Assembly (NCBI GenBank): GCA_965112735.1
Contig: OZ218963.1
Coordinates: forward strand, 2,604,001-2,668,000
DNA: 64,000 nucleotides
From: Phaeosaccion multiseriatum
Taxonomy: Eukaryota > Protista > Ochrophyta, other classes
Direction: 5' to 3'
Shown piece after piece: positions 3,001 to 48,655 of the stretch. Made by a program: the position numbers and the translations under genes. Position 1 is the first letter of the stretch. The number at the start of each line of letters is the position of its first letter. Below the pieces are notes generated by a model. The model worked only from the letters and a program-made list of their open reading frames with translations. It was not told where the DNA came from and searched no databases.

Positions 3001-5053
3001 TGAAGCTGAGGATGCAGTGGATTCAGTTTCCAAGGAGCCGGTGGAGCAGGAGTCCACCTTGCAGCGCGAGCTTGATGGGCATCGACGAGAGGCAGAGCGA
3101 CAGTTTGGGTGGTCTCTACCAGGCACGGTGCCTGCTGCCGCGGCGCACAGACGAGCGGCTGGAGCTTTGGGTGGCAGTCTGCATGTCGAGGCCGCGTGGT
3201 GGGTGCGTGCGCAGCGGGCTGATGCGGAGCTGGAAGCACTCCGTCGCCGTGTTCAGGCTGGGCCCACCGGCGGCGTGGTGGATGCCGGTGGGGGTGAGTT
3301 CTTTGTGGATGAGGACGGGCTCTTGATGCGTAAGTGGGCTCCTGGGGGCTTTCGGTGGCGGGTGCGGCACACTCGGCTACAAGTATGTGTGCCCAAGGAG
3401 ATGCGGCCAGCCTTGCTGCATGCCGCCCACACCGATGCCATCGCAGGCGGGCACCAAGGCCCGGGACGTATGCTAGACGCGCTGCAAGAGCGCGTATGGT
3501 GGGAGAAGATGAATGCACATGCGCTGTATTGGGCCCGCTCCTGTCTGGCGTGCCAGACACGCAAGACTCCTCGCCGGCAGCCAAAGCCTGTGCCGCTGTC
3601 GTCCATTTCCAAGGTGGATGGACCTTGGGCGGTCATGGGCGCTGATGTGGCTGGCCCCTTTCCTATGGGCATGGGCGGTGAGGAGTACCTCTTGGTGTTT
3701 CAGGATTGGTTCACGAAGTGGACAGTGGTGGTGCCTTTGAGGGCACAGGACTATACGGCGGAAGGTATTGCTCGGGCCTTCGTGCGGCATGTCGTCACCA
3801 CCCTGGGTGTGCCCCGAGTGCTGGTGAGTGATCAAGGCTCGCAGTTCACCAGTGCGCTCATGGGCGATGTGATGCGGGTTCTATCGGCGTCGCAAGTGTT
3901 CACGACGCCGATGCACCAACAGGCCAATGGGCAGGTGGAGCGCTTCATGGCCACGATCAAGGACATGTTGGCGACGACCGTGGAGTCACAGATGCAGCAG
4001 TGGCCAGATTACGTCGCCGGGCTCACCTATGCGTACAACTGCCGCTCGCAGGAGAGCACGGGGATGGCGCCATTCTACGCCTTGTTCGGTCGGCACCCCC
4101 CGGTGCCTCTACAGGCGATGCTTCCGGCGCTAGTGGAGGACGGGTCGTTTTCGTCTGCCTCGGCATGGGTCCACGAACTGCGGGCACGTCTGGCTGCGGC
4201 TGCGGCGGTGGTAAATGGGAGGCGCTGCGACTACCACGGGAGATTGCAGCTGAAGAACGCCTCACGCCGTTGGCCGACGCCCCTGCGACCCGGAACCAAG
4301 GTGATGTTGTATCGTCCTGGTGCCGCCGCCCAGCAAGAAGGGGAAGAACTCGAAGGGCCCCCGTCAGCGCAACTCAAGGCTCTGCAGCACTCGTGGGATG
4401 GTCCTTATACAGTCTTGCCTTGGCCATCTCTGGGGGCCTACTGTGCTCAGCATGGGCGGGTGAGTGAAGAGCACTATCAGGTCATGCAGCGCAGCGCAGT
4501 GTATCTGTCTATGAAACGGGTGCGCGGCAATGGTGTGGAGCAGCTGCAACGGGCGTACCACAGAGATTTGACGAAGCCGTTCATCGATGGGGTGAGCGAG
4601 CGGCCCTTCGGTCTCCCGGAAGGGTTCGCCAGGTATCATATCCGTTGGTGCTCTCCTCAGTGGGCTACCAGCGCAATGCAGGAGCAGCGTAGCTTAGAGC
4701 TGGACGAGGTGAGTGAGGGGAAAGTGCCCACGCTGGCGAGGATTGTGAAGTTCCGCTGGCGCAAAGCCACGGGGCTGCCACTGCGGCGAGAGTATAACGT
4801 GCGGTGGGCCGTGTCGGACGGCGGCACTTTCCAGACCTGGGAATGGGCTGAGTGGTTACTGGAGCGGGGACACGCCAAGGCCATAGAGGCGTTCGAGAAC
4901 GCCCTTCCGCACACTGCCCTTGATCCAGGAGTGAATGTCAAAAAAGGGAGAAGGTTTAAACGGGAAAGCACGATCCGTCTGCGGCAACATGAGAAGTGGG
5001 GCAGCGGGCTGGCGCACGAGACGCAATTCTATCGCTCGCATCTCGGCTTCTGA
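2..5053 (+). CDS. pol: Exo-Gypsy Pol, copy 1 (5' end outside the window): RT - RNase H - DEDDy exonuclease - integrase - chromodomain-like C-terminus
   Basis: One open ORF. RT motifs DIMSGYF, VMPQG and FVDD; RNase H LSTDAS, ELELLAVV and TDHQPL; exonuclease VAMDSEW, HHWSHD and YAFAD; integrase HHCC (HAAH..GH..CLAC) plus DDE core (GADVAG, SDQGSQF, NGQVER); GPY motif; EYNVRW..TWE. Confidence 0.96.
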   Translation: MRRGIEIEIDKLLAAAIIRPSTSSWATPLMAVLKTDAAGKTKCHEDGTPVVRMTCDLSQLNDACRTEAPAMPVIDDLLAEMRGSKVFSVMDIMSGYFNVSMASAAEEDISTFVCHSGTYAWRVMPQGAKNAPAVFVRLMNKVLKGLQEHVACFVDDIAVFSATVEQHLEHLDAVLARLVEHKLKLEPSKAVLGAPEVWFCGHLLDQNGVRTDPAKHAAVQELVKPFRLLAKDGGVNRVKQVRRFIGMLSYFRRFIPEFARKVRPLNGLLRKGVDVSTAWNASHDAAWDGLVADLLSSPALAFPEYGPATTFTLSTDASTEGLAGVLSQKDATGEERVVTFISRATTETEARLSSTELELLAVVWCVRKLAMYICHYPTTVVTDHQPLLWLAGHKDTNSKLFRWYERLSTHHLQFVHRPGKQMVVPDCLSRNALPVQEWATHAGVDLAMVACGWPSPLHTWCASMGVQLNLVEMVGDECSLHWEEPTEGALLRFLAVAQQLQGEADTRLPIPVPAVTAQQQQQRCHHQQQSGAEALQAWQTAEVDLSATQSRKGTARRAWTQRLQQCGWQPTRAPQLGVKKAVIEAWQPGQMPPFVSHISAARCTYVSTPRHVQALSTQLRTAKVVAMDSEWARHRRRASLLQLAVQVGPLPDVARDYGLLLDLDALQKAGGMMVLAQELRDLWAEPSIVKLAHHWSHDQRALGRWPALAEHVQHIVNLVDTSDLFKRVCPEHAQFIGLQDLVSMFLEQHLSKEERATDWTKRPLSAAQQEYAFADAAALLRLWPRMAECVPFVHGGPGVELRAMSPAHTPAEQEEMQVGRFMQAAVGYWGDRDHVSPLYIFGVHSKTLEVFDLAKLQFKLQCSWETMMQVVELFTRTYKRQRKVVGALASHLDTMIELPWKQVRQVSCDYFSMCTPAEAQQTGAAAAHAWAAWEAELEEDASRLLSEVCPAAVAGATEGEELVPEEGRITPPGEPPAAESPSEPGTADLLVTEEAGDAGNEAEDAVDSVSKEPVEQESTLQRELDGHRREAERQFGWSLPGTVPAAAAHRRAAGALGGSLHVEAAWWVRAQRADAELEALRRRVQAGPTGGVVDAGGGEFFVDEDGLLMRKWAPGGFRWRVRHTRLQVCVPKEMRPALLHAAHTDAIAGGHQGPGRMLDALQERVWWEKMNAHALYWARSCLACQTRKTPRRQPKPVPLSSISKVDGPWAVMGADVAGPFPMGMGGEEYLLVFQDWFTKWTVVVPLRAQDYTAEGIARAFVRHVVTTLGVPRVLVSDQGSQFTSALMGDVMRVLSASQVFTTPMHQQANGQVERFMATIKDMLATTVESQMQQWPDYVAGLTYAYNCRSQESTGMAPFYALFGRHPPVPLQAMLPALVEDGSFSSASAWVHELRARLAAAAAVVNGRRCDYHGRLQLKNASRRWPTPLRPGTKVMLYRPGAAAQQEGEELEGPPSAQLKALQHSWDGPYTVLPWPSLGAYCAQHGRVSEEHYQVMQRSAVYLSMKRVRGNGVEQLQRAYHRDLTKPFIDGVSERPFGLPEGFARYHIRWCSPQWATSAMQEQRSLELDEVSEGKVPTLARIVKFRWRKATGLPLRREYNVRWAVSDGGTFQTWEWAEWLLERGHAKAIEAFENALPHTALDPGVNVKKGRRFKRESTIRLRQHEKWGSGLAHETQFYRSHLGF

Positions 5054-5091
5054 GGGAGCTGGCGGAAGAGGCGGGGGTGTAGTGAGGGGGA

Positions 5092-5286
5092 TGTTAGAAG
5101 TGGCCTAGTTGGGGTCCCTTGGGGACCCAATCAGGGGTGTAACGGCCGGAAAACGGGCCAACGAGACGGTAAATCAGTAATAAAGAAAGGAAGCGCAGCC
5201 TGCGTGTGGGCTGGCTTCCGGGTGCTTGCTTCAGCTTCTGCTCTGCTCTAGCTTGGCTTTGAGGCTAGCTGTCGGTAGTTTCGACA
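5092..5286 (+). repeat. Exo-Gypsy 3' LTR (195 bp), preceded by a purine-rich PPT
   Basis: TGTTAGAAGT...AGTTTCGACA follows GAGGGGGA. Near-identical copies at 12013-12207, 43586-43780, 45482-45676 and 47404-47598. Confidence 0.9.
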
Positions 5287-5424
5287 CAGACGTGCCCGCA
5301 GTTCGTGGACCCATGCCGAGGCAGACGAAAACGACCCGTCCTCCACTAGCGCCGGAAGCATCGCCTGTAGAGGCACCGGGGGGTGCCGACCGAACAAGGC
5401 GTAGAATGGCGCCATCCCCGTGCC
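5287..5424 (-). mobile_element. Inverted fragment of an Exo-Gypsy integrase region (probable target of the copy 1 insertion)
   Basis: Reverse complement of about 4056-4192. Confidence 0.8.
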
Positions 5425-5427
5425 TCC

Positions 5428-7296
5428 ACTAGGCCACTTCTAACAGAGGTCAATACTCTGACCACTGCTAATGACTTACTCTCGCACTCTTCCACTGATG
5501 AGGAAATCGCCCACCTTAGTGGCGAGCTGAACGTGTGGGGTGACATGACCTCTCGCTTCCGCTCGGTCCCAGGCTCTGCTACAAAGCCTCTTGATCCTCC
5601 GGAAGACCACACTGTACGCGTGAGTGCCCTCCAACGCACCTTCTCTCCAGGATCAGTGCACGACTCCATGGACAGTGACTTTGAGTGGCCCTCTCTCGAG
5701 GAGATTCGCTCTTCTCAAGCGGCTGCCCAAGGCACGCTCACTCTCGAAGCGCTTGCAGCTCAGCAGCACCTTGCTTCTCTGGAGCATGATGCTGACCTCG
5801 ACGCCATTGTGGTGCCTCAATCGGCGTCTTCACGTCCTTTGTGGATACCCAGTGACGACATTGACCTACAAGTCCGACTCTCTGTCATTGCACATCAAGG
5901 ATCGGCAGGGCATCGCGCTGCCGATACCACTCTCTCCGTTCTCTCGGAACGATTCCACTGGCACACCATTGGTGCCGACCTGACTCGCTTTGTTGACCTC
6001 TGCCTCCATTGCCTCACCAACTCCCATGGGCATCGCATACCTCGCCCTCTTCGCGGTGCGGTCCACCCTACCAAGCCCAATCAGATGATTCATTTCGACT
6101 TCGTCCACATGCATGACTTGGGCTGCACTTCCTTGCCATACCTGTTGGTCATCCAAGATGCCTTCAGTGGTTACACCATGCTCAACGAATGCGCTTCCAC
6201 CACTGCAGACGCAGCTGTCGGTGGATTGATGCGCTGGTTCAGCACATTTGGAGTAGTGAGCAAGTGGCAGAGTGATCGAGGCAGTCACTTCCTCAACCAT
6301 GTGATGAAGCGCCTAGCGACTGAGCTTCGCGCCAAACATCGCTTCTCGGCTCCATACTCTGCTTGGAGTAATGGTCTCGCTGAACGAGCTGTACGCACTG
6401 TCGTTTCAGTCTACCGCTCTCTCCTCTCTGAGTTTCGCATTGACGCGGACGACTACAATCTGATCACACGCTCTGGTCCAAGCTGCCATCAACACCACGA
6501 TCAGCTCGACCCGCAAAGAGACTCCACTCTTTCTGCACACTGGCCTACGTTCGACGACTCCACTTGATATCGTCTTGCAACAGGGCGACAGCTTCGATGT
6601 TGACTTCCAATCTTCGCCGCCAACTCTTGAACAGCTCAACCACTATGGTGCTCAGCTGCAAGCGGTTCTTGAAGTTGCTGCTCAACTTGAGCGCTCGCGG
6701 GCGACGGCTCGCGACCGTCACAATCGTCGTCTGGACACTACTCGTCTTGGACATCAACACCGCAAGGAGCTGGCTCTCTCGGCGGCCCTCAACTACGAAG
6801 GCCTCTACATGCCGGGCATCTATGTCCTTGTCGCTTCCAAGAGCCGCTACTCCAAGCTCTCTGGAGTCTGGCAAGGCCCTATAAAGTGCTGGAGGAGATT
6901 GACACTCTGGTCTACAAAGTGCAACATCTTGTCTCGAAGCAAACCTCTGAAGTGCACGCTTGCCGCTTGCGCTACTACGCTGACCAGCATCTCAATGTCA
7001 GTACTGAGCTGCTTAAGCAGATCTCACACGACTCAGCCTCCTGGGTTGTCTCCGCCTTCAAGGACCTACAACGTCCCTCTCAAGGCGCACCCTGGCAGGT
7101 TCACACCTCCTGGAAGGGCTTCAATGCCACCGACGATACTTGGGAACCTTTGACAGTCATGAATGATGACGTTCCTGCTCTCTTAGAGCAATTCCTCTCC
7201 TCTTTCCCTCGTCGTTCTTTGGCGGAGGATGCTAAGCGCTTCCTTCGGTCTCGCGACCCCTCGTCACGCCGACGCCCGCGAGCAGGCCGCCGATAA
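5428..7296 (+). pseudogene. Degenerate Gypsy (clade 2) integrase and chromodomain, frameshifted
   Basis: HQGSAGH..CLHC, IHFDF, WQSDRGSHF and NGLAER; WQGP; chromodomain WKGF..DTWEPL. Split over ORFs 5383-6567, 6575-7153 and 6886-7296. Confidence 0.88.
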
Positions 7297-7894: not shown

Positions 7895-10546
7895 CTAATC
7901 GTCCTTCCCCATGAGGGCGGGCCAGGCGGCCTTGAGATAGCCCGATCCCGAAGTCACTGTCAGCACCGTCGACCCCACAAGGAGGTACTGCAGGAGGCAG
8001 GCAGGCAGACAGGTCCATCATCCAGAGAAGAGAGACAAGACAGAGTCAGGCACATCAGAGAGACGGGAGGGAGAAGAGAGACACCAGTGCGGCGCAGCGA
8101 GAGAGGGCTTTCCCATCTCCTATAAACCCGCTGCGCATTACTCATCAGTACTCATGGTGTGGGGCGAGAGTAGCGCTTGCCCCGCGCCATGCTGTTCGTG
8201 TTCTGCCTACTCGCTCATCTCCCCCTTTCTCCAACAAACACACACCTTCGTGGCGGCGAAGCACGACTTGGGGATGATAGTGTTGTCGCAGCCCGGCATC
8301 AGCAAGAGTAGGCCCGTGATGGACACCATGGTGAAAGCAGTCTTGACTTTTCCCGCCATGCCCACCTGCCATGGCAAACCCAGTCAAAGTGGGGTCCATA
8401 GTTACTGGGAGAGGACAGAACGAAGAGGGAGAGCGAGACGAGAGTTCCGAACTCTTCCAAGAAGGGTCATCCCAAAACAGCAAAATCACAGAAGATAATG
8501 ATGGTGATGGTCGCAAAGAAAGAGTCACCCCCTGTTCCATGCGGCGCACCGTCAGTCGCTCACCTTGACGTTGCCCCTCTTGCCGATCTGAGCCATCCAC
8601 TCTCGAAGCGCGCTGATGCCAATTTCCCGAGCGATAATGATGGCGGTGCATGCAGTCATCCAAATGCCGAGTCTCTCCGCGAGCAGGATCAGCGCTGTCG
8701 ACACCATGAGCTGAGGCACGAGGGCAGCAGCAGTCGTCGCATGCAGCAGGACAAGGAAGCACGTAGTACGGGGGTTGGGGTCAGGAGTGAACTTGAGGTA
8801 AAGGTCTAGAGAGTGGAATACGGGCCACCAAAGAGAGAGGAGTGAGTCGCCAAGTAGGAGGCAGATACACGTCCAATCGAGCACCTGCAGCTCGAGAGAT
8901 ATGCCCCCACCTGCAACATTGAACACAATCGACACGACTGTTTCGTACCTTGTCAGCGACTGGATCCAGAAAGGCACCAAAGGCACTGACAATGTTGTAT
9001 TTCCTCGCCCACCAGCCATCGACATAGTCCGTGATGGCTGCCAGAGCAAAGATGGTCGCCGCCACCACATTCCGGGAGGGGATGTCCATGTAGAAGACGC
9101 TGATACACGAACGAAAGTACAGCATACAGCACGGGCCATGGGCTGGGGTCAGGGGAAACATACGCACGCCCTTAGACAACAGCAGCGGCAAAGAGGAGCC
9201 ACGAGGTAGGCACCCCGTGGGTGAGAAACAGCCCCCAGAGGCCCTGAGGGCCTCACACAGCAAGAGCGGGAAGGGCAACTTTCCCGACGAGGTTCGAGAG
9301 AATAAGATAGGGACTCGGAATGTGTGGTGTAGGACACTCCCACCTCCCCTAAACTGACCCCGGCCACCAGGTCTAATGTTTGAAATGCCGCAGCAGGCCT
9401 GACATCAAAAGGGACTCACGTGGCGAAGACCGGGATGGAGGCCAGGCGCAGGAGAGAGAGCACGTTCGGCACGTTCCATAAGGGCGCCTTCTCCGGCGAC
9501 AATTCAATTGAAGACACCGACTCGGGCCCCAGTCCTGTGGAGGTGACGTGCGACTGCTGCTGGAGAGGGCGGCGACGCAGCACGGGAAGCGGAGCGATAA
9601 GGGAGTAGCAGCTACGGTTTAGAGAGTACACAGGTAAGAAACCCGCACAACTGGGCAACAAAATACGATGGACAACCGCAGCTCAAAGCCCTCAGGGATG
9701 GAAAACCAGGGACCCCCCTCCGCATGGACAGGACACCGCTACTCTAGTGTACTGGGGGATCCGACACGCCCTGCCAAGATGATCTCTACCCACCTCTGCC
9801 GCAGGCCCCCCGCCCTGGGGCCCATCGTCGCGGCTATCTATACCCCCCGCCAGTGCGACGCCTAATGCCCCTCCTCTGAGCCCCGTCAGGCACAGACTTC
9901 CCTGGACACCTCCGCCTGCTCCGGCTCCTGCTTGTGCTCCCGCTGACTTTACCCAAGCACCCGTCTGTGCAGTGGAAGCATTCACACATTGCCATTGTCT
10001 TTTCAAGCGAGTGAAATGGTACACACGTGTGCCCAATAGCTAAATATCCTACACACCGAGAGAGGGAGATCTAAAAGAAATGTATCCTACAAACAGGGAG
10101 AAGAAGAGCTTTTTTCCCCGGTCTTTCCTGTTCCAAGCTTTAGTTCCCCTCTCTCACCAGAGAATACCGACTGCCCCCGCGCCCTCGAAGGCCCAACCCG
10201 CCTCCTCCCACTTCTGTTGCTCCAACGTGAAAGGCAGGAGTTGCGCTGAAGCCGCAAACGCTGTAGCCGCAAACGCCGTAGCACAGCGCAAAAAGAGTTG
10301 ACCTGAAGGAGAGGGCGAGGGGGAGGCTTAAACAAGCAACATTAACGTGACTTAAACAGGACATCAACTGCAGCAACAGCAGAGAGAGGTTTGCATGCAG
10401 GAGCGAAGTCCGACTCACGCGAGGAGAACGAGTTGCTGTTGCTGTTTTCTTCTCCTGCTCAAGCAGTGCTGCTTGTGGCGTGGCTGGCCGCTCAAAGTGC
10501 CCAATCTCCGAAAGCCGCAAAAGAAATTACTCCTGTTTTCTTCCAT
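7895..10546 (-). CDS. pgsA: CDP-diacylglycerol--glycerol-3-phosphate 3-phosphatidyltransferase (PGP synthase), spliced. Predicted exons: 10546-10419, 10302-10168, 9611-9420, 9099-8949, 8710-8564, 8365-8246, 7987-7895
   Basis: Phase-consistent GT-AG introns join LWNVPNVLSLLR, TDYVDGWWAR..FGAFLDPVADKL (CDP-alcohol phosphotransferase motif), IIAREIGISALRE, GKVKTAFTMVSI and YLLVGSTVLTVTSGSGYL..stop. The two 5' exons give a hydrophobic signal plus a GF/AF motif and are less certain. Confidence 0.88.
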
Positions 10547-11192: not shown

Positions 11193-12012
11193 TGTGCCCA
11201 CAAGCTCTACAAAGGGTTTAGAGAATACTCCACAGGCTTTGTGCCAATGTGTGAAGCCTCCTATTATAATCTTGTAGCCTGCTCGTCGAGCGAGGTACCT
11301 TGTTGAATAAAAGAAAAGAAAGTGGAAGTCCAAAGGACATTCCAGAAAAGGGGTCCTGACACCAATACTGACATAGCCCTATTTTAACCCCGGGCAAGTA
11401 TCAATATCGACCTAGACCCAGACAGCACACTGCCTCCAAGGCGAGCTCGGGAGGGACTACCCTCAAGACTAAGCTTTACGTACAGCATCCTCAATGTCGT
11501 GAACGCGCAGCTCTCTTGCGTACCTTCTTCGTCGGCGGTCCTGAGCCTCGAGACAGAAACTCCCGAGCTCGACTGACAAGCTCCTGGTCTGGGAAGTTCT
11601 TAAGAAAGGTCTCCAAAAGGACAGGCACATCAGCCGCAAGCGTACGGATGGGCTCCATGCTGTTCTCCTCCGGCTCAAAGCCAACCCACTGAACTTGGAC
11701 GAGAAAGTCGCCACCCTCATCCTCGACGAGGTCGACGAATCTCTCCACAGTCCACAAGGGAGTGTCGTACTGGATCTGGGCGAGTGCGTCAGTGCTGACA
11801 CCAACACTCGCATCACAATAGTAGCGTAGCCGTGAAGCATGATCAGTGAAGCGCCTCTTCTTGCCAATCAGCTCCTCCACTTCATATACCATGGGGCTCA
11901 CCTCACAGATCACTCTGTAGGGCCCACTCCACACTCCACGCAGCTTGCTATGGGCCGAAACGTTGGCCATATTGACAAAGACACCAGGAACGAAGACGCC
12001 AGTGTGACCAAG
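11193..12012 (-). mobile_element. 3' remnant of a clade 2 Gypsy: GPY and chromodomain ORF (11491-11970), PPT, and an LTR starting at 11429 (far end uncertain)
   Basis: WSGPYRV and QWVGF..NSMEP motifs; GGAGGCAG followed by TGTGC on the minus strand. Confidence 0.75.
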
Positions 12013-14073
12013 TGTCGAAACTACCGACAGCTAGCCTCAAAGCCAAGCTAGAGCAGAGCAGGAGCTGAAGCAAGCACCCGGAAGCCAGCCCACACGCAGG
12101 CTGCGCTTCCTTTCTTTTATTACTGATTTACCGTCTGTTGGCCCGTTTTCCGGCCGTTACACTACTGATTGGGTCCCCAAGGGACCCCAACTAGGCCACT
12201 TCTAACATCCCCCTCACTACACCCCCGCCTCTTCCGCCAGCTCCCTCAGAAGCCGAGATGCGAGCGATAGAATTGCGTCTCGTGCGCCAGCCCGCTGCCC
12301 CACTTCTCATGTTGCCGCAGACGGATCGTGCTTTCCCGTTTAGACCTATGCCCTCTTTTGAAATTCACTCCTGGATCAAGGGCAGTGTGCGGAAGGGCGT
12401 TCTCGAACGCCTCTATGGCCTTGGCGTGTCCCCGCTCCAGTAACCACTCAGCCCATTCCCAGGTCTGGAAAGTGCCGCCGTCCGACACGGCCCACCGCAC
12501 GTTATACTCTCGCCGCAGTGGCAGCCCCGTGGCTTTGCGCCAGCGGAACTTCACAATCCTCGCCAGCGTGGGCACTTTCCCCTCACTCACCTCGTCCAGC
12601 TCTAAGCTACGCTGCTCCTGCATTGCGCTGGTAGCCCACTGAGGAGAGCACCAACGGATATGATACCTGGCGAACCCTTCCGGGAGACCGAAGGGCCGCT
12701 CGCTCACCCCATCGATGAACGGCTTCGTCAAATCTCTGTGGTACGCCCGTTGCAGCTGCTCCACACCATTGCCGCGCACCCGTTTCATAGACAGATACAC
12801 TGCGCTGCGCTGCATGACCTGATAGTGCTCTTCACTCACCCGCCCATGCTGAGCACAGTAGGCCCCCAGAGATGGCCAAGGCAAGACTGTATAAGGACCA
12901 TCCCACGAGTGCTGCAGAGCCTTGAGTTGCGCTGACGGGGGCCCTTCGAGTTCTTCCCCTTCTTGCTGGGCGGCGGCACCAGGACGATACAACATCACCT
13001 TGGTTCCGGGTCGCAGGGGCGTCGGCCAACGGCGTGAGGCGTTCTTCAGCTGCAATCTCCCGTGGTAGTCGCAGCGCCTCCCATTTACCACCGCCGCAGC
13101 CGCAGCCAGACGTGCCCGCAGTTCGTGGACCCATGCCGAGGCAGACGAAAACGACCCGTCCTCCACTAGCGCCGGAAGCATCGCCTGTAGAGGCACCGGG
13201 GGGTGCCGACCGAACAAGGCGTAGAATGGCGCCATCCCCGTGCTCTCCTGCGAGCGGCAGTTGTACGCATAGGTGAGCCCGGCGACGTAATCTGGCCACT
13301 GCTGCATCTGTGACTCCACGGTCGTCGCCAACATGTCCTTGATCGTGGCCATGAAGCGCTCCACCTGCCCATTGGCCTGTTGGTGCATCGGCGTCGTGAA
13401 CACTTGCGACGCCGATAGAACCCGCATCACATCGCCCATGAGCGCACTGGTGAACTGCGAGCCTTGATCACTCACCAGCACTCGGGGCACACCCAGGGTG
13501 GTGACGACATGCCGCACGAAGGCCCGAGCAATACCTTCCGCCGTATAGTCCTGTGCCCTCAAAGGCACCACCACTGTCCACTTCGTGAACCAATCCTGAA
13601 ACACCAAGAGGTACTCCTCACCGCCCATGCCCATAGGAAAGGGGCCAGCCACATCAGCGCCCATGACCGCCCAAGGTCCATCCACCTTGGAAATGGACGA
13701 CAGCGGCACAGGCTTTGGCTGCCGGCGAGGAGTCTTGCGTGTCTGGCACGCCAGACAGGAGCGGGCCCAATACAGCGCATGTGCATTCATCTTCTCCCAC
13801 CATACGCGCTCTTGCAGCGCGTCTAGCATACGTCCCGGGCCTTGGTGCCCACCTGCGATGGCATCGGTGTGGGCGGCATGCAGCAAGGCTGGCCGCATCT
13901 CCTTGGGCACACATACTTGTAGCCGAGTGTGCCGCACCCGCCACCGAAAGCCCCCAGGAGCCCACTTACGCATCAAGAGCCCGTCCTCATCCACAAAGAA
14001 CTCACCCCCACCTGCATCCACCACGCCGCCGGTGGGCCCAACCTGAACACGGCGACGGAGTGCTTCCAGCTCC

Positions 14074-39227: not shown

Positions 39228-42200
39228 TGTCGGTCGTGCGTACGTCGTTTTACAACCCCAAAGGCCCGGGCTGGTGGGGGCGACGGCGGAGGCACAGCGG
39301 CGGGTCTGGAGGGCCCGACAGGTTGTGGTCATGCGGCGGTGGCGTGAAGGGCATGTGTTCCGCTGCCCTGCGTCTGCGGCCGCTGGCGTGCCCCGGGGGG
39401 TCATGTCTCTGCCGCTCGGGGTCCCTCCATGGGAACAGTCTCTCCGTGACCCCAGCCTGCTTCGTGAGTGGGTGTGGGCGGCGCAGGAGTGGGTGATCAG
39501 CGACGCACAGACAGCTACGCAAGCTGCACAGCGCTGGGCGGCAGAGTGCGCGGCCGCGCACGCGCGTGTGCTGACGTGGGCGGCCGAAACGTTTGTGATT
39601 CCGTCGGCTGGCCGTCGCGTGCCTTCGGGGGTGGGGGCTGGGCCTTCAGTCGCGCCGGCAGGGGGTTCTGCTCTGCTGGTCGACGATTGCGATGATTTCG
39701 ACGCGCTGCTCGCGGAGCACGTCACCCTGCTGCCGGAGTGTAGTGGTGCTCTTCCTGCATTGTCTCCGACGGCGAAGGCGTGTCGAGCAGCCGCGCTCCT
39801 GGCACCAGCTGCAGACCCGGTGGAGAGGGAGTGCGTCAGTGGGTGCTCTCTGAGTGCGGAGCGGGAGCCCTGCGAGGTGTGCGTGCAGCGAGCGAGGGTG
39901 GAGATGGCGGCGCTCTCAGTTACTGACGATACAGGGGCGGCGTATCTGCGGCGGGAGGCGAGGCGGAAGCAGATTGAGATGACTCTGGCGATTAAGCAGA
40001 CAGGGCGTACCGGGGTGGCGGTCAATCCGCGTGGGCATACGGTATCGGTGGTGCTTCAGTCTGCCCTTCAATTGCGCGAGCATCCGTCACGGGCTCCGAT
40101 GTCGCTCACGGTGCAGGCCTTGGTGGACACCGGCGCCACTCACACGTGTGCCTCACGTGCGACCTTTGATCGTGGCGTCGCCGCAGGGGTCTTTCAGGTG
40201 CGGGACTTGGCGGAGGAGCGAGTGGCAGTTCGGTACGCCACGACTCAGGCCGCTACTTCAGCCTCGCTCGCTCGGGTGTGGGTGCAAATCGCCCTCACGC
40301 CTACGTGTCAGCCGGTGGTGGCCATGTGGGTAGTGGAGCACCTCGCCCGTCCCTTGATCTTAGGCCAAGACGTGCTCACGATGGTGGGGGCGGTTACTGA
40401 CCACAAGGTTCATCAGCTGTACGTGCACCCCACGGAGGCGAGTTCTCCGTCGTCGGAGCCGCGGTCGGAGGTCGACGACACCATCGCCGTGGCCGCTGTC
40501 AGCTTGGGGGAGTGTCAGGTGCTGGCGACTGAGGCACTTCGCCTCGCCCCGGGCGGCAAGGCCGCGCTCGTGCTGGAGGTGGACGGGGGTGTCGCAGGCG
40601 GGCGTCTCAGTGTGGAGTTGGGTGCCCACGGGCAGTTGCAGGCGCAGCAGGAGGCGTTGTGGTGGCTGAACCACGAGCAAGTCCTGGTGAGTCGTGCGGC
40701 GTGCGTGGTCGGTGCCACGCAGCAGTGGAGCATCGGTATACACAATCAGCACAATGAGACGATAGTCGTGGTCCCTGGGCAGGCTGTGGGCGTGGGCACG
40801 TATCTGCTGGCGGAGGAGGATCGGGGGGGCAGCGGTGGAGGTGGCGTTATGTGAGCCGGCTCCTCTTGTTGCGCCTTGCACGCCGGCCGGGGGCCTTCGT
40901 TCGCTCCCGCGTCGCTGGGCACGCTGGGGTGCGTCTCGTGCTGTGGTCGGTGGCGAGGAGCGTGGTGGTGGTGTCGGTGGAGGAAGTGCAGCAGCGGCCG
41001 TCGCAGGCACAGGAGTAGGAGGAGGCACCGGTGGAGTGGCTGCCTTGTGGCCTTCAGGTGGCGCTGGGGGAGCCGGAGGAGGAGGAGGAGGAGGAGATGG
41101 AGGAGGCGGCGACGGCGGAGGCGGCGCTGGCGGGGACGGAGGAGGAGGAGGCGTAGAAAGAGGAGATGGCGAAGGCGGCGCAGGTGGAGGTGGCGCTGGA
41201 GGAGACGGAGGAGGAGGAGGAGGAGGAGATGGCGGAGGCGGCGACGGTGGAGGAGGAGGAGGCAACGACGGAGCGGCCCGACAGGCGTGGCTCGCGGCTG
41301 TGGCTTTGCGTGAGCGCTGGGGACGCGAGGCAGTGGCCTCCGATCTGGTCGATGGGCCTGAGGATGTTTTCCGCCCTGTGCCGCTGGGGCCCGTGGCTCT
41401 GGGAGCCGTCCGTGCTCCGGTCGTGCAGGCAGTGCGGCCCGTGACGAGGGAGTCGGGCAAACACAGGCCATGCAGGCCTACTCGGCTGGGGCTCGGTCGG
41501 CGTCTACGGGTAGCGCGGCGGCACGTCTCACTCTCAGTGGAGGGGCCTTTTACTGCTGGTCCTAGCATCTTGGCTCGACACGCACGGGCCGTGGCGGCCG
41601 CAGCCGCCGCTGGAGGAGGCACAGGTGGTGGTGGTGGAGGAGGAGGAGGAGGAGGAGGAGGAGGAGGAGGAGGAGGAGGAGGAGGAGGAGGCGGAGGAGG
41701 CGGAGGAGGAGGAGCAGGAGGAGGCTCAGAGGGCGGAGGAGACGGAGGAGGCGAAGGAGGAGGAGGAGGAGGAGGAGGAGGAGGAGGAGGAGGAGGAGGA
41801 GGCGGAGGAGGAGGAGGAGGAGGAAGAGGAGGAGGAGGAGGAGGAGGAGGAGGAGGAGGAGGAGGAGGAGGAGGCGGAGGAGGAGGAGGCGGAGGAGGCG
41901 GCGGCGGAGGAGGAGGAGGAGGCGGAGGAGGAGGAGGAGGAGGAGGAGGAGGAGGAGGAGGAGGAGGAGGAGGAGGAGGAGGAGGAGGAGGAGGAGGAGG
42001 AGGAGGAGGTGCCCCTTCCCTGTGCGTGTCCGAGGTCTGTGTGGCAGCGGTGGACGGGGGGCCCTCAATTGGCGACGCTGTGACTGGGGCGGTGGAGGTG
42101 GTGCCACCCACGGTGTCTCCACAGGCCACTCTGCATACCTTGCAGGATGACGTGGCGATGGGGCAGCAGGTTGAGGCTACGGCGGGCAGCCTGCACGGCC

Positions 42201-43585
42201 CGACCTGGGCTATCGACGAGCATGGTGCCTTGACGCTTGGTGGCACGGGTGATGGACGGCAGGCGGGCACACGGGAGGCCGCTCACAGCTTGATCCTGCG
42301 TGAGTGGGCGCCGTGCCTTGCAGCGAGTGGGCAGGAGCGGCTCCGTACGTGCTTGGCGGCTGCGGAGGTGGGTGCAGTTACGGCTCTCCTGCTCTTACGC
42401 CCACACGTGCAGCAGACGCAAGGGGGACTCGAGGGTGTCGATGATGTGGTGGTGGCCCGGTGGTTGGAGCAACTCTTGTCCATGTGGAGCAGTCACTCGT
42501 TGCTGAAGCAGGCCGGTGTGGAGACGGAGCTGAACGCAGCACTGCAGTTATTCCTCACCATTCGGCGACTATTGTGGCAGTGTCGTGTCCTGCGGGCGGA
42601 GGTTGGAGGATTGGCAGGTGGTGAATGTGTGCAGCAGCAGCGGCGACGGGCGCAAGCAGCAGTGGCACGTGCCACATTCTACCAGGCGCAGCTGCCCCAG
42701 CACATGCACGCTATGACCATCGGTGATGAAGGTTGGACAGAAGCGCAGCGGTGGGGCTTGGTGGTGGTGTTGAAGCAGCGAGTAGCGGCATTCTGCGTGG
42801 ATGGGAGCGACTACGGCCGCACTGATTCGGGACGGTTTGGTGTTCCGTTGTTGGACCCGAAGCAGCCGCCAATTCGGAGTGCGGCACGGCGCTACCCTCC
42901 TCCGGTCCGCCGCGGTATTGAGATTGAGTTGAACAAGATGTTAGCGGCAGAGATCATCCGGCCCAGCACAGCAGCCTGGGCCACTCCTCTCATGGCCGTG
43001 TTGAAGACGGACGAGCACGGCAACACCAAGTGCCACGAGGACGGCACTCCGATTGTGCGGATGACGTGTGACCTGCCACAGCTCAATGACGCGTGCCGCA
43101 CGGAGGCGCCCGCCATGCCAGTGGTGGATGATTTGCTGGCGGAGATGCAGGGGTCTACGGTCTTTTCGGTGATGGACATCATGTCCGGCTACTTCAACGT
43201 GCCGATGGCCACCACGGAGGACGAGGACATCTCTACCTTTGTCTGTCACAGTGGCACGTACGCCTGGCGGGTCATGCCACAGGGAGCGAAGAATGCACCC
43301 GCCACGTTCGTACGCCTTATGAACACGGTTTTGCAGGGCCTGCAGGCGTTTGTGGCGTGCTTTGTGGACGACATTGCGGTCTTCTCCGCCACGGTGGATC
43401 AGCACATTGGCCAGTTAGACCAAGTTCTCGGCAGGATGGTGCAGCACAAGCTCAAGCTGGCGCCGAGCAAGGTGGTGTTGGGGGCACCACAGGTGCGCTT
43501 CTGCGGGCATTTGGTGGATAGTGAGGGGGTGCGGGCCGATCCAGCCAAGTATGCAGCAGTGCGAGCGCTGGCCAAGCCCACCGCG
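39228..43585 (+). mobile_element. Exo-Gypsy relative, truncated: LTR end at 39254, protease (LVDTGA) ORF 39274-40854, then poly-Gly spacer and RT 40835-43585
   Basis: RT strongly similar to copy 1 (DIMSGYF, VMPQG, FVDD). Frameshift in the G-run near 40823-40830. Confidence 0.88.
41611..42010 (+). repeat. (GGA)n microsatellite encoding poly-Gly in the pol frame
   Basis: About 400 bp of GGA/GGC triplets, with a smaller tract near 41076-41265. Confidence 0.95.
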
Positions 43586-45676
43586 TGTCGAAACTACCGA
43601 CAGCTAGCCTCAAAGCCAAGCTAGAGCAGAGCAGAAGCTGAAGCAAGCACCCGGAAGCCAGCCCACACGCAGGCTGCGCTTCCCTTCTTTTATTACTGAT
43701 TTACCGTCTGTTGGCCCGTTTTCCGGCCGTTACACTACTGATTGGGTCCCCAAGGGACCCCAACTAGGCCACTTCTAACATCCCCCTCACTACACCCCCG
43801 CCTCTTCAGCCAGCTCCCTCAGAAGCCGAGATGCGAGCGATAGAATTGCGTCTCGTGCGCCAGCCCGCTGCCCCACTTCTCATGTTGCCGCAGACGGATC
43901 GTGCTTTCCCGTTTAGACCTATGCCCTCTTTTGACATTCACTCCTGGATCAAGGGCAGTGTGCGGAAGGGCGTTCTCGAACGCCTCTATGGCCTTGGCGT
44001 GTCCCCGCTCCAGTAACCACTCAGCCCATTCCCAGGTCTGGAAAGTGCCGCCGTCCGACACGGCCCACCGCACGTTTTACTCTCGCCGCAGTGGCAGCCC
44101 CGTGGCTTTGCGCCAGCGGAACTTCACAATCCTCGCCAGCGTGGGCACTTTCCCCTCACTCACCTCGTCCAGCTCTAAGCTACGCTGCTCCTGCATTGCG
44201 CTGGTAGCCCACTGAGGAGAGCACCAACGGATATGATACCTGGCGAACCCTTCCGGGAGACCGAAGGGCCGCTCGCTCACCCCATCGATGAACGGCTTCG
44301 TCAAGTCTCTGTGGTACGCCCGTTTGTTAGAAGTCGTACTTTTGCTAGACTAATACCTGCCCTCTGAATTCAGACCGGGAGGTATCAGTCTAGCAAAAGT
44401 ACGACTTCTAACAAGACCGTTGCTAGAATACGAACCCCCCCCCCCCACCGCACATAGTGAAGAGAAGTAACTCGCAGTCTGAGAATCAGCATCATGGGCC
44501 AGCAAGCTGGTAACAGTTTTCGCCGAAAAATACGCTTTTTCACAAGCGACAGCTAAGGTTCGAACTCACAACTAGCCTTGTTAGAAGTCGTACTTTTGCT
44601 AGACTGATACCTGCCCTCTGAATAATTTTATATTTTATATTCAGAGGGCAGGTATCAGTCTAGCAAAAGTACGACTTCTAACAAGGCTAGTTGTGAGTTC
44701 GAACCTTAGCTGTCGCTTGTGAAAAAGCGTATTTTTCGGCGAAAACTGTTACCAGCTTGCTGGCCCATGATGCTGATTCTCAGACTGCGAGTTACTTCTC
44801 TTCACTATGTGCGGTGGGGGGGGGGGGTTCGTCTTCTAGCAACGGTCTTGTTAGAAGTCGTACTTTTGCTAGACTGATACCTCCCGGTCTGAATTCAGAG
44901 GGCAGGTATCAGTCTAGCAAAAATACGACTTCTAACAAACGGGCGTACCACAGAGACTTGACGAAGCCGTTCATCGATGGGGTGAGCGAGCGGCCCTTCG
45001 GTCTCCCGGAAGGGTTCGCCAGGTATCATATCCGTTGGTGCTCTCCTCAGTGGGCTACCAGCGCAATGCAGGAGCAGCGTAGCTTAGAGCTGGACGAGGT
45101 GAGTGAGGGGAAAGTGCCCACGCTGGCGAGGATTGTGAAGTTCCGCTGGCGCAAAGCCACGGGGCTGCCACTGCGGCGAGAGTATAACGTGCGGTGGGCG
45201 GTGGCGGACGGCGGCACTTTCCAGACCTGGGAATGGGCTGAGTGGTGGCTGGAGCGGGGACACGCCAAGGCCATAGAGGCGTTCGAGAAAGCCCTTCCGC
45301 ACACTGCCCTTGATCCAGGAGTGAATGTCAAAAGAGGGCATATGTCTAAACGGGAAAGCACGATCCGTCTGCGGCAACATGAGAAGTGGGGCAGCGGGCT
45401 GGCGCACGAGACGCAATTCTATCGCTCGCATCTCGGCTTCTGAGGGAGCTGGCGGAAGAGGCGGGGGTGTAGTGAGGGGGGTGTTAGAAGTGGCCTAGTT
45501 GGGGTCCCTTGGGGACCCAATCAGTAGTGTAACGGCCGGAAAACGGGCCAACGAGACGGTACATCAGTAATAAAGAAAGGAAGCGCAGCCTGCGTGTGGG
45601 CTGGCTTCCGGGTGCTTGCTTCAGTTTCTGCTCTGCTCTAGCTTGGCTTTGAGGCTAGCTGTCGGTAGTTTCGACA
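43586..45676. repeat. 2.09-kb palindrome: Exo-Gypsy LTR, pol 3' end and family A element, mirrored about 44625-44637
   Basis: The left half is the reverse complement of the right half with scattered substitutions. Confidence 0.92.
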
Positions 45677-46552
45677 GTAGTGCGGGTGAATGGTGTTCTC
45701 AGTGGTCTTGGTTCCACTACCGAAGTTGGTGCGCGGCCAAAGAGGAGGGGGCGGCGGTCGAAGAAGCGCAAGGTAAGGCCCGACGGGGTCAGTGATCCGG
45801 CAGAGCGGCAGCTGGAGGAGGAGCGGCAGTTGCAGCAGGAGATTGACGCGATGAAGTGTGATCCGGCAAGGCAGCGCCGGTGGCAGCAGGAGTTTAAAGC
45901 GGATCCTCCGGACTGGTGGGACGGGCCTTCTCTCTCTCTGAAGGATCGGCTGCAGCAATTGGAAACGGAGCAGGCCGCGCATGGAGTGCCTCGTACGGTT
46001 GCAACGCTGGGACAGCAGCTGACGGTGGGGACGAGCCAGCGCTAGCGCAGTCGTGCACAGCCACGGAGGGTGAGTTTAAGGCCTTGGGCTTTCTCACCCT
46101 GCCGTGGCTGGCAGGTGTGTGGAAGGGTGACCTGTCGAGTGCCACGTCACACACTGGTGGGTGAGTTTTACTTTTTTCCCAGTTTTTGGTTACAGTCGAG
46201 CTTCAGTAGGTGAAAACGCTTGAGTTGCGTGGGGACACGCAACATGTTAGAAGTCGTGCTTTTGCTAGACTGGTACCTACCCTCTGAATATTCAGACCGG
46301 GAGGTACCAGTCTAGCAAAAGCACGACTTCTAACAAACAGTCTTGTCAGGGGAGTGTTAGAAGTGCAGGGATGGCTGACGGGGATGTGGAAAGTCAGTCG
46401 TATGTCAGTGGCCCAGGCCTAGGCAACGCAGTGAGAAACGGGGCCCGTTTCTCACTATCCTCCTGTAGGTGGTCGTTTAGGACAGTGCATAGATAAGCTA
46501 ATAGATACAAGGCCGGCTGTCAGGCCAGCTTTGGGGTGCTGCTACCTTATCC
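45677..46552 (+). pseudogene. Diverged 3' fragment of the gag-like element with a partial LTR
   Basis: Homologous to about 38240-39080. Confidence 0.85.
46245..46335. mobile_element. Solo family A hairpin with TSD AACA
   Basis: 91-bp palindrome (centre GAATATTC). Empty site near 38864. Confidence 0.9.
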
Positions 46553-46943
46553 CGTCTGAATTCAGAGGGTAGGTACCAGTCTAGCAAAAGTACGACTTCT
46601 AACAAGGTAATTGCGAGTTCGAACCCTGGCTGTCGCTTGTGAAAAAAACGTATTTTTCGGCGAAAACTGGTACCGGCTTGCTGGCTTGCTGACCCATTAG
46701 TCTGATACCCAGACTGCGAGTTACTTCTCTCCACTATGTGCGGTGGGGGGGGGTTCGTCTTCTAGCAATGGGCTTGTTAGAAGTCGTACTTTTGCTAGAC
46801 TGGTACCTACCCTCCCGGTCTGAATTCAGAGGGTAGGTACCAGTCTAGCCAAAAGTACGACTTCTAACATTTTCCTAGACTGGTACCTCCCGGTCTGAAT
46901 GCAGAGGGTAGGTACCAGTCTAGCAAAAGTACGACTTCTAACA
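46553..46943 (+). mobile_element. Family A subfamily copy with a tandem partial hairpin
   Basis: Half hairpin, variant internal region (AGGTAATTGCGAGTTCGAACCC), then two hairpins. Confidence 0.82.
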
Positions 46944-46945
46944 GC

Positions 46946-47403
46946 TGTCGCCTACAGATAGGATGGAACTAGACACACGGACAAGGTAACAGCAACCCGA
47001 AAGCCAGCCTAGCAGCCAGCCTTGCCTCTATTACTTATCGCATGCTAGTCCTAAACGACCACCTACGCACGTAGGATAGTGAGAGCCACGCCACCCGTTC
47101 TCACCGTATCTGCCTGGGCCTGGGCCATTGACTTATGGCCCATCTCATCTGAGGCCTTCCAACATCCCCAATGCCTATCCCGGGGCCTTCCAACATCCCC
47201 AATAGCTATCCGCCACTTCCAACATCCCCTTGACAAGACTGTTGCGTGTCCCCACGCAACACAAGCGGATTCGCCTACTGAAGCTCGACTGTCGCACAAG
47301 CCTCCATGCTGCTTTCGAAAAAAAACCGGATGAGAATTATGCAACACTCACCCAGATGTGTGCGACCGCTCCTCCCACACACACCCCCTGTATTGATGAG
47401 AAA
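46946..47403 (-). mobile_element. 3' end of an LTR-D element with triplicated PPT/att units
   Basis: LTR plus three CTTCCAACATCCCC units; the 3'UTR is homologous to that of the gag-like element. Confidence 0.75.
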
Positions 47404-48655
47404 TGTCGAAACTACCGACAGCTAGCCTCAAAGCCAAGCTAGAGCAGAGCAGAAGCTGAAGCAAGCACCCGGAAGCCAGCCCACACGCAGGCTGCGCTTC
47501 CTTTCTTTTATTACTGATTTACCGTCTGTTGGCCCGTTTTCCGGCCGTTACACTACTGATTGGGTCCCCAAGGGACCCCAACTAGGCCACTTCTAACATC
47601 CCCCTCACTACACCCCCGCCTCTTCCGCCAGCTCCCTCAGAAGCCGAGATGCGAGCGATAGAATTGCGTCTCGTGCGCCAGCCCGCTGCCCCACTTCTCA
47701 TGTTGCCGCAGACGGATCGTGCTTTCCCGTTTAGACCTATGCCCTCTTTTGACATTCACTCCTGGATCAAGGGCAGTGTGCGGAAGGGCGTTCTCGAACG
47801 CCTCTATGGCCTTGGCGTGTCCCCGCTCCAGTAACCACTCAGCCCATTCCCAGGTCTGGAAAGTGCCGCCGTCCGACACGGCCCACCGCACGTTATACTC
47901 TCGCCGCAGTGGCAGCCCCGTGGCTTTGCGCCAGCGGAACTTCACAATCCTCGCCAGCGTGGGCACTTTCCCCTCACTCACCTCGTCCAGCTCTAAGCTA
48001 CGCTGCTCCTGCATTGCGCTGGTAGCCCACTGAGGAGAGCACCAACGGATATGATACCTGGCGAACCCTTCCGGGAGACCGAAGGGCCGCTCGCTCACCC
48101 CATCGATGAACGGCTTCGTCAAGTCTCTGTGGTACGCCCGTTGCAGCTGCTCCACACCATTGCCGCGCACCCGTTTCATAGACAGATACACTGCGCTGCG
48201 CTGCATGACCTGATAGTGCTCTTCACTCACCCGCCCATGCTGAGCACAGTAGGCCCCCAGAGATGGCCAAGGCAAGACTGTATAAGGACCATCCCACGAG
48301 TGCTGCAGAGCCTTGAGTTGCGCTGACGGGGGCCCTTCGAGCTCTTCCCCTTCTTGCTGGGCGGCGGCACCAGGACGATACAACATCACCTTGGTTCCGG
48401 GTCGCAGGGGCGTCGGCCAACGGCGTGAGGCGTTCTTCAGCTGCAATCTCCCGTGGTAGTCGCAGCGCCTCCCATTGACCACCGTCGCAGCCGCAGCCAG
48501 ACGTGCCCGCAGTTCGTGGACCCATGCCGAGGCAGACGAAAACGACCCGTCCTCCACTAGCGCCGGAAGCATCGCCTGTAGAGGCACCGGGGGGTGCCGA
48601 CCGAACAAGGCGTAGAATGGCGCCATCCCCGTGCTCTCCTGCGAGCGGCAGTTGT

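Follow-up and report, generated by a model that had tools for sequence, protein, structure and literature searches.

How did the 3′ ends of two Gypsy retrotransposons come to stand back to back across a mirrored pair of hairpin-ended mini-elements, and were they joined in one inserted molecule or by a rearrangement of the chromosome? The 2.1-kb palindrome that raises this question lies at 43586-45676 of a 64,000-nucleotide stretch of the Phaeosaccion multiseriatum genome (C14:2604001-2668000), here called the window, and the analysis was extended by 100 kb downstream. Positions are those of the window; beyond it we use "big" coordinates, in which the window numbering is carried on (C14 minus 2,604,000).

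The palindrome is present in the assembly as two arms, 43586-44624 and 44638-45676, each consisting of 739 nt from the 3′ end of a Gypsy element, G, and 299 nt of a mini-element, A (BLAST against the window). A repeat search returned an inner arm pair (43710-44624 and 44638-45552; 915 nt, 99% identity, 13 nt in between) and an outer one (43586-43690 and 45572-45676; 105 nt, 98%). Gapped alignment of the whole arms revealed 17 differences in 1040 columns; the inner 547 hold 3 of these and the outer 493 the other 14. A mirror of 1 kb is beyond chance, and chance or an ordinary repeat was rejected as its origin. At the centre, one half-hairpin is found in two copies with an A/T hinge (44625-44637) between them. 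The Gypsy sequence is identical for 247 nt on either side of the resulting A dimer (44325-44937), which is flanked by CGTT and AACG. These are reverse complements and hence mirror images, and no direct 4-bp target site duplication (TSD) surrounds the dimer.

Genome-wide, the junction between pol and A was found in the two arms of the palindrome only. Likewise, among the sequences examined, a private variant of A (TTCTCTTCACT, the T variant) was confined to the two arms, against 25 copies that have the common variant. The genome-wide junction search returned no progenitor Gypsy copy in which A occupies this site, and the reciprocal junction, in which upstream pol would be followed by a TSD and an A terminus, was not found in the genome either. 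The outer ends of the palindrome have no TSD in common, as CGCG... adjoins the left end and GTAG... the right. The initial annotation had described the palindrome mirroring the Gypsy 3′ end, its centre of two half-hairpins joined by AT filler, the single A insertion point and private variant common to both arms, differences between the arms at about ten or more positions and the missing outer TSD, and in all of these observations it is borne out.

Table 1. Coordinates of the palindrome, its surroundings and comparable mini-element dimers
Feature	Position	Strand	Description
W 5′ half	39267-43585	+	target of the left Gypsy insertion; TSD CGCG at 43582-43585
Left arm, Gypsy part	43586-44324	-	last 739 nt of G (G 11712-12451); 3′ LTR 43586-43780
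Left A copy	44325-44624		complete outer 89-nt terminal hairpin, approximately 160 nt internal sequence and inner half-hairpin
A/T-only hinge	44625-44637		sole asymmetric part of the palindrome
Right A copy	44638-44937		mirror of the left copy, 3 differences in 299
Right arm, Gypsy part	44938-45676	+	last 739 nt of a different G insertion; 3′ LTR 45482-45676
Spacer S	45677-47403	+	fragment of element C with nested A/B pieces
Gypsy copy Y, 3′ end	47404-48142	-	99.6% direct repeat of the left arm, 3818 nt off
A/B whole-element head-to-head dimers with TSDs	L001 1216-1840; L006 1212-1826; L007 1215-1833; L013 1218-1856
Example of an A/T-hinged inverted dimer	C14:1588216-1588840		same architecture

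G is a Ty3/Gypsy element in which the Pfam domains follow the order RVT_1, RT_RNaseH, Integrase_H2C2, rve. A full-length copy is 12,451 bp long with 195-bp LTRs, TGTTAGAAGTGG...TTTCGACA (TGTTAG...), and three more copies besides the two arms were found in the window using BLAST. G copies have 4-bp TSDs, namely TTTC at both ends of copy Y and CTAC for copy V. The mini-element A and its sister B, which have a unit of approximately 340 bp, also generate 4-bp target duplications, and both ends of the unit are formed by an 89-nt near-perfect hairpin that starts with TGTTAGAAGTCG and ends with ...CTTCTAACA. The A terminus TGTTAGAAGTCG (44325-44336) and the start of the G LTR, TGTTAGAAGTGG (45482-45493), match at 11 of 12 nt, a better match than that to the LTRs of W and C, the elements that flank the palindrome, which start differently. 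This resemblance makes the integrase of G the likely mobiliser of A and B, with G probably their autonomous partner.

When the 67-Mb genome was searched, with strict and relaxed patterns, for a half-hairpin followed after at most 30 nt by the same half-hairpin inverted, 11 symmetric junctions were found, including the centre of the 2.1-kb palindrome; the relaxed patterns added none. Five are mirrored over the 45-nt hairpin arm alone and five are whole-unit, head-to-head dimers with arms of 298-312 nt and A/T hinges. Across the ten junctions other than that of the palindrome, the hinges include 6 G+C in 134 letters. As four of the five whole-element dimers are surrounded by perfect 4-bp TSDs (GGAG, GTCA, ACAG and TGAG), the A/B family regularly produces A/T-hinged inverted dimers that insert as a unit. 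Exactly this architecture is present at 44325-44937, with two units that meet at the same half-hairpin across a hinge of A and T only, and the half-hairpin and A/T filler at the centre probably arose before the palindrome event and not from it. A computed fold of the 613 nt comprising A, hinge and A′ is a single DNA hairpin (-392 kcal/mol, z = -69). Symmetry that runs past the element into the flank was seen at the 2.1-kb palindrome alone among the 11 junctions. Other palindromes centred on A or B half-hairpins, for which the initial annotation had proposed a search, do exist, and most of the whole-element ones have TSDs, but extension into flanking DNA is not repeated at any of them.

On its left, the palindrome adjoins the RT region of a different Gypsy family, W (Pfam RVT_1). 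The 5′ half of W present there is 97.7-98.1% identical to an uninterrupted copy, W2 (C14 ~2733225-2746905, big 129225-142905), which has 201-bp LTRs. In the window, W ends at W2 position 134396. Position 134399 is where a third W fragment (big 93274-94968) begins, and this fragment adjoins the start of a G 5′ LTR at big 94969 (C14:2698969). On W2, the two halves overlap by exactly 4 nt, CGCG. Judged from its sequence and that of the flank, the left arm stems from a G copy that inserted into W with the TSD CGCG, and it represents the 3′ end of that copy. The Gypsy part of this arm is 98.8% identical to full-length G (BLAST), and its closest relative is the neighbouring copy Y (99.6%). This insertion has its 5′ end 51 kb away in inverted orientation, where it now makes up the 5′ part of Y2 (C14:2698969-2726675), a chimeric copy that has mismatched TSDs, CGCG at the 5′ end and TTTC at the 3′ end. 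The separation of the two CGCG copies by 51 kb reflects either an inversion, via exchange between inverted G copies, or ambiguous orientation in the assembly. The W open reading frame upstream of the RT (40922-42009) contains a long array of GC-rich repeats with a period of 9-15 nt, and W2 has the array too.

The right outer end belongs to a different insertion. Window positions 44938-47449 are 99.72% identical, in inverted orientation, to big 125144-122630, a locus 80 kb away that contains the G copy here called G15. The A′-pol junction is the exact start of the match, which crosses the LTR end and the GTAG junction and continues into the flank. The Gypsy part of the right arm is 99.7% identical to G15 (C14:2728406-2729144), which is continuous through G position 11712 and does not contain A. 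The GTAG at 45677-45680 is found at the G15 junction with the same flank, and the right flank matches element C from C1 position 38240 onward. Spacer S was the target both of the right-hand Gypsy insertion (GTAG) and of Y (TTTC), whose 3′ end is tail-to-tail with the right arm. A search for the 5′ end that belongs to the right-hand insertion, expected as GTAG with a C-like left flank, found none. At the 11 sites where the right arm differs from both the left arm and Y, it has the G15 state in every case, while the left arm is of the Y type; accordingly, the differences between the arms cluster in their outer part. The inverted duplication is at least 2.5 kb long and probably exceeds 10 kb.

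The initial annotation had proposed that a molecule starting at the centre of the A hairpin ran through the downstream LTR, snapped back and was fixed as an inverted dimer with two U5 ends. The part of this proposal that survives is fold-back copying, which would account for the mirrored A-pol junctions, while the fixed dimer does not survive. Its left U5 end has a mate of its own 51 kb away, complete with the 5′ LTR, CGCG and the other half of W at C14:2698965, and its right U5 end, along with its flank, is a 99.7% duplicate of a locus where the Gypsy is continuous and contains no A.

How far the lineage markers can be trusted depends on the history of the G copies. Y (big 47404-70128) and Y2 are identical over G 4501-7000 and have a nested A at G 5728-5736 in common; at G 8001-9000 they differ at 8-9 sites per 500 nt, and there Y is nearly identical to copy Z. 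The G copies are mosaics, and this pattern suggests frequent ectopic gene conversion. Because of the mosaicism, identity profiles did not locate the limits of the duplication inside G copies, and markers alone could mislead or postdate the event, while evidence from flanks and TSDs is immune to it. In the inner 262 nt of the Gypsy part of the right arm, the sole informative marker, at window position 44947, has the state of the left arm, from which G15 differs. This fits copying from the left arm but could also reflect a later private change in G15 and is not decisive.

On balance, the evidence leans towards the palindrome being a junction made by chromosomal repair, at which the tails of two separately inserted Gypsy elements were fused, and not an inserted dimer. 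A head-to-head A dimer with an A/T hinge would have inserted as a unit at G 11712, in the 3′ region of pol, in one G copy; insertion as a unit is documented for the A/B family by the TSDs and, by analogy, is presumed for the copy at 44325-44937. The 613-bp near-perfect palindrome so created may then have broken, or been resolved as a hairpin or cruciform, and the 3′ end of the folded single strand would have primed synthesis on its own flank, giving rise to the mirror A-pol junction. Within at most 262 nt of Gypsy sequence, the growing strand would have switched by homology to an oppositely oriented G copy, one inserted in element C beside Y. The lineage markers and the flanks both point to such a switch. 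As a result, the two arms would stop at LTRs from different insertions, on the left that of the W-embedded copy and on the right that of the copy within C.

Several features are explained by this history of fold-back and switch, including the start of the inverted duplication at the palindrome, the missing reciprocal junction and the end of each arm at a genuine but different LTR terminus. Since the two ends stem from two integrations, no TSD common to both is expected. The mirrored CGTT and AACG flanks are predicted by templated fold-back copying and not by integration into a pre-existing site. Fold-back copying through A appears to be the only simple route to mirrored A-pol junctions on both sides, and it is from this symmetry, not from the markers, that we infer copying from the left arm across the junction. 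The inverted duplication that starts exactly at the palindrome may have formed in the same event or in a separate homologous exchange, and the same choice applies to the 5′ half of the left copy, which could have been inverted to its place 51 kb off by a separate exchange between inverted G copies. The divergence of A from A′ together with the inner pol (3/547) is compatible with the 0.28% of the duplication, and a single origin for palindrome and duplication is possible on this comparison, if not proven.

Routes that involve no copying were also considered. Integration of a dimer into a pre-existing Gypsy/Gypsy palindrome was rejected, as the 4-mers that flank the dimer are not a direct repeat. 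Homologous exchange alone, whether between inverted G copies or inverted A copies, gives only collinear chimeras and was likewise rejected; the mismatched TSDs and the 51-kb inversion are accounted for by exchange between inverted G copies, but the head-to-head junction is not. A palindromic dimer with two U5 ends that integrated as a unit would have a single TSD in a single target, and this model was therefore rejected. In a rescued form, exchanges after integration replaced one or both flanks. Both outer ends do stop exactly at the LTR terminus ...TTTCGACA, and unit-integrated dimers are known for the mini-elements. However, the TSDs differ, CGCG having its mate beside a 5′ LTR and the right-hand GTAG junction recurring at a full-length paralogue, two additional exchanges are needed, and, as the right arm is of the G15 type, the arms are not sister copies over their whole length. 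We regard this rescued form as the least probable of the explanations considered.

An assembly artefact, arising either from a chimeric read that folded back or from a wrong join between near-identical Gypsy copies, has to be considered in a region that is a nest of 98-100% identical repeats and in which segments bounded by long inverted G copies could be ambiguous in orientation. A fold-back read predicts identical arms and mirrored flanks, whereas the 17 differences seen are structured by lineage and the outer flanks differ and obey the logic of TSDs. These two observations make misassembly unlikely. In addition, the structure, at 2.1 kb, is shorter than typical long reads, and its hinge is the same in kind as those of the ten other junctions. 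An artefact is thus quite improbable, if not to the degree of the rescued integration.

Slightly less improbable than an artefact, but still doubtful, is the possibility that two opposite G copies both contained A at 11712, that the tips of the two hairpins were cut and the ends joined with A/T filler, and that the DNA between the two cut hairpins was lost. The symmetric breakpoints and the filler would be accounted for, and the flanks and TSDs of two different insertions would be expected. Against this, G15, the paralogue of the right-hand copy, does not contain A at 11712, and nor does any other G copy. Further, the two A copies have the private variant in common and differ at only three sites, and for these reasons they are sisters and not independent insertions.

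A small chance, if the largest among these alternatives, remains for a cDNA bridge, in which the RNA of an A-bearing Gypsy was reverse transcribed with a U-turn at the tip of the A hairpin, and the palindromic cDNA, instead of integrating, recombined at its ends with two opposite resident G copies and so joined them. The centre is structured like those of the unit-integrated dimers, which must form outside the chromosome, and a homology-mediated patch would leave arms that end, as these do, in resident copies with different TSDs. However, an A-bearing Gypsy template is needed and the pol-A junction is found nowhere else in the genome. Two simultaneous exchanges with two copies are also required, and the exact start of a large inverted duplication at the palindrome is left unexplained. 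That the replication chemistry of the mini-element itself made the palindrome, through a U-turn of the reverse transcriptase on an A-containing Gypsy transcript, A/T tailing and recombination of the cDNA into the chromosome, we consider about as doubtful as the cutting of two hairpin tips. If true, hairpin elements would be able to capture and duplicate their flanks and to promote rearrangements among Gypsy copies.

Palindromic duplications are known to arise through fold-back priming at palindromes that already exist, and palindromes formed by fold-back priming or from hairpin-capped breaks are described in yeast systems with Alu inverted repeats or short inverted repeats and in palindromic amplification in tumours (reviewed in PMC7999016). 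As in those systems, the palindrome at the centre here, which would have been in place before the event, has kept its asymmetric spacer, the mirror copy extends beyond the palindrome into flanking sequence without a target duplication, and a larger inverted duplication starts at the palindrome. Unlike them, the event in the algal transposon island is natural and fixed and was not selected. Here, a transposon dimer would have supplied the palindrome, the copy would have run for at most ~260 nt and then moved by homology to a dispersed repeat, and the visible palindrome ends at two retrotransposon termini. As a rearrangement, the palindrome belongs to a known class, to which it adds a new natural case.

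The A/B dimers and the palindrome are alike in the core at 44325-44937, which has the same half-hairpin, an A/T-only hinge and complete outer hairpins (TGTTAG...CTAACA). They differ in that the dimers have direct 4-bp TSDs (four of five) and symmetry that stops at the element ends, whereas the palindrome has mirror-image flanks and symmetry that continues for a further 739 nt. Self-primed, snap-back cDNA, the classical product of hairpin priming by reverse transcriptase, and the dimer replicative forms of parvoviruses, which are rolling-hairpin dimer intermediates, resemble the A/B head-to-head dimers in being joined at a hairpin, and by analogy a process of this type is a likely origin of the mini-element dimers. 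Unlike such intermediates, the Gypsy parts of the palindrome end in two separate integrations. Ectopic recombination between inverted retrotransposon copies is known to produce inversions, for example in Ty-mediated rearrangements in yeast. The chimeric G copies, the mismatched TSDs (CGCG/TTTC) and the inverted mates 51 kb apart are of this kind; the head-to-head junction is not, and homologous exchange explains its surroundings only.

That the hairpin element can transduce flanking DNA, as the initial annotation had suggested, finds no support, as A/B dimers insert as units and one of 11 junctions reaches into the flank, and the palindrome no longer counts as evidence for it. What remains is the unusual biology of the family, with its hairpin mini-elements and unit-inserting inverted dimers. 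The case illustrates how secondary rearrangements can arise from the long perfect palindromes that a transposon makes. In this retrotransposon-rich island of a stramenopile alga they comprise an inversion, an inverted duplication and a fold-back junction, and their history can be reconstructed from TSDs.

Two further pairs of 4-mers in the region are possible split TSDs in inverted arrangement. CAGA is found at a 3′ end at window position 5286 (+) and at a 5′ start at big 151930 (-; C14 ~2755930), and CCTC at a 5′ start at window position 5445 (-) and at a 3′ end at big 153014 (+; C14 ~2757014). Together, these pairs hint at a second inversion, of roughly 146 kb. Between its RNase H and integrase, the pol of G also includes a Pfam DNA_pol_A_exo1 3′-5′ exonuclease domain (E 2.5e-20), at window positions 1814-2362 on the + strand (amino acids 605-787 of the open reading frame at 2-5053), which is an unusual and unexpected accessory domain for a Ty3/Gypsy element.
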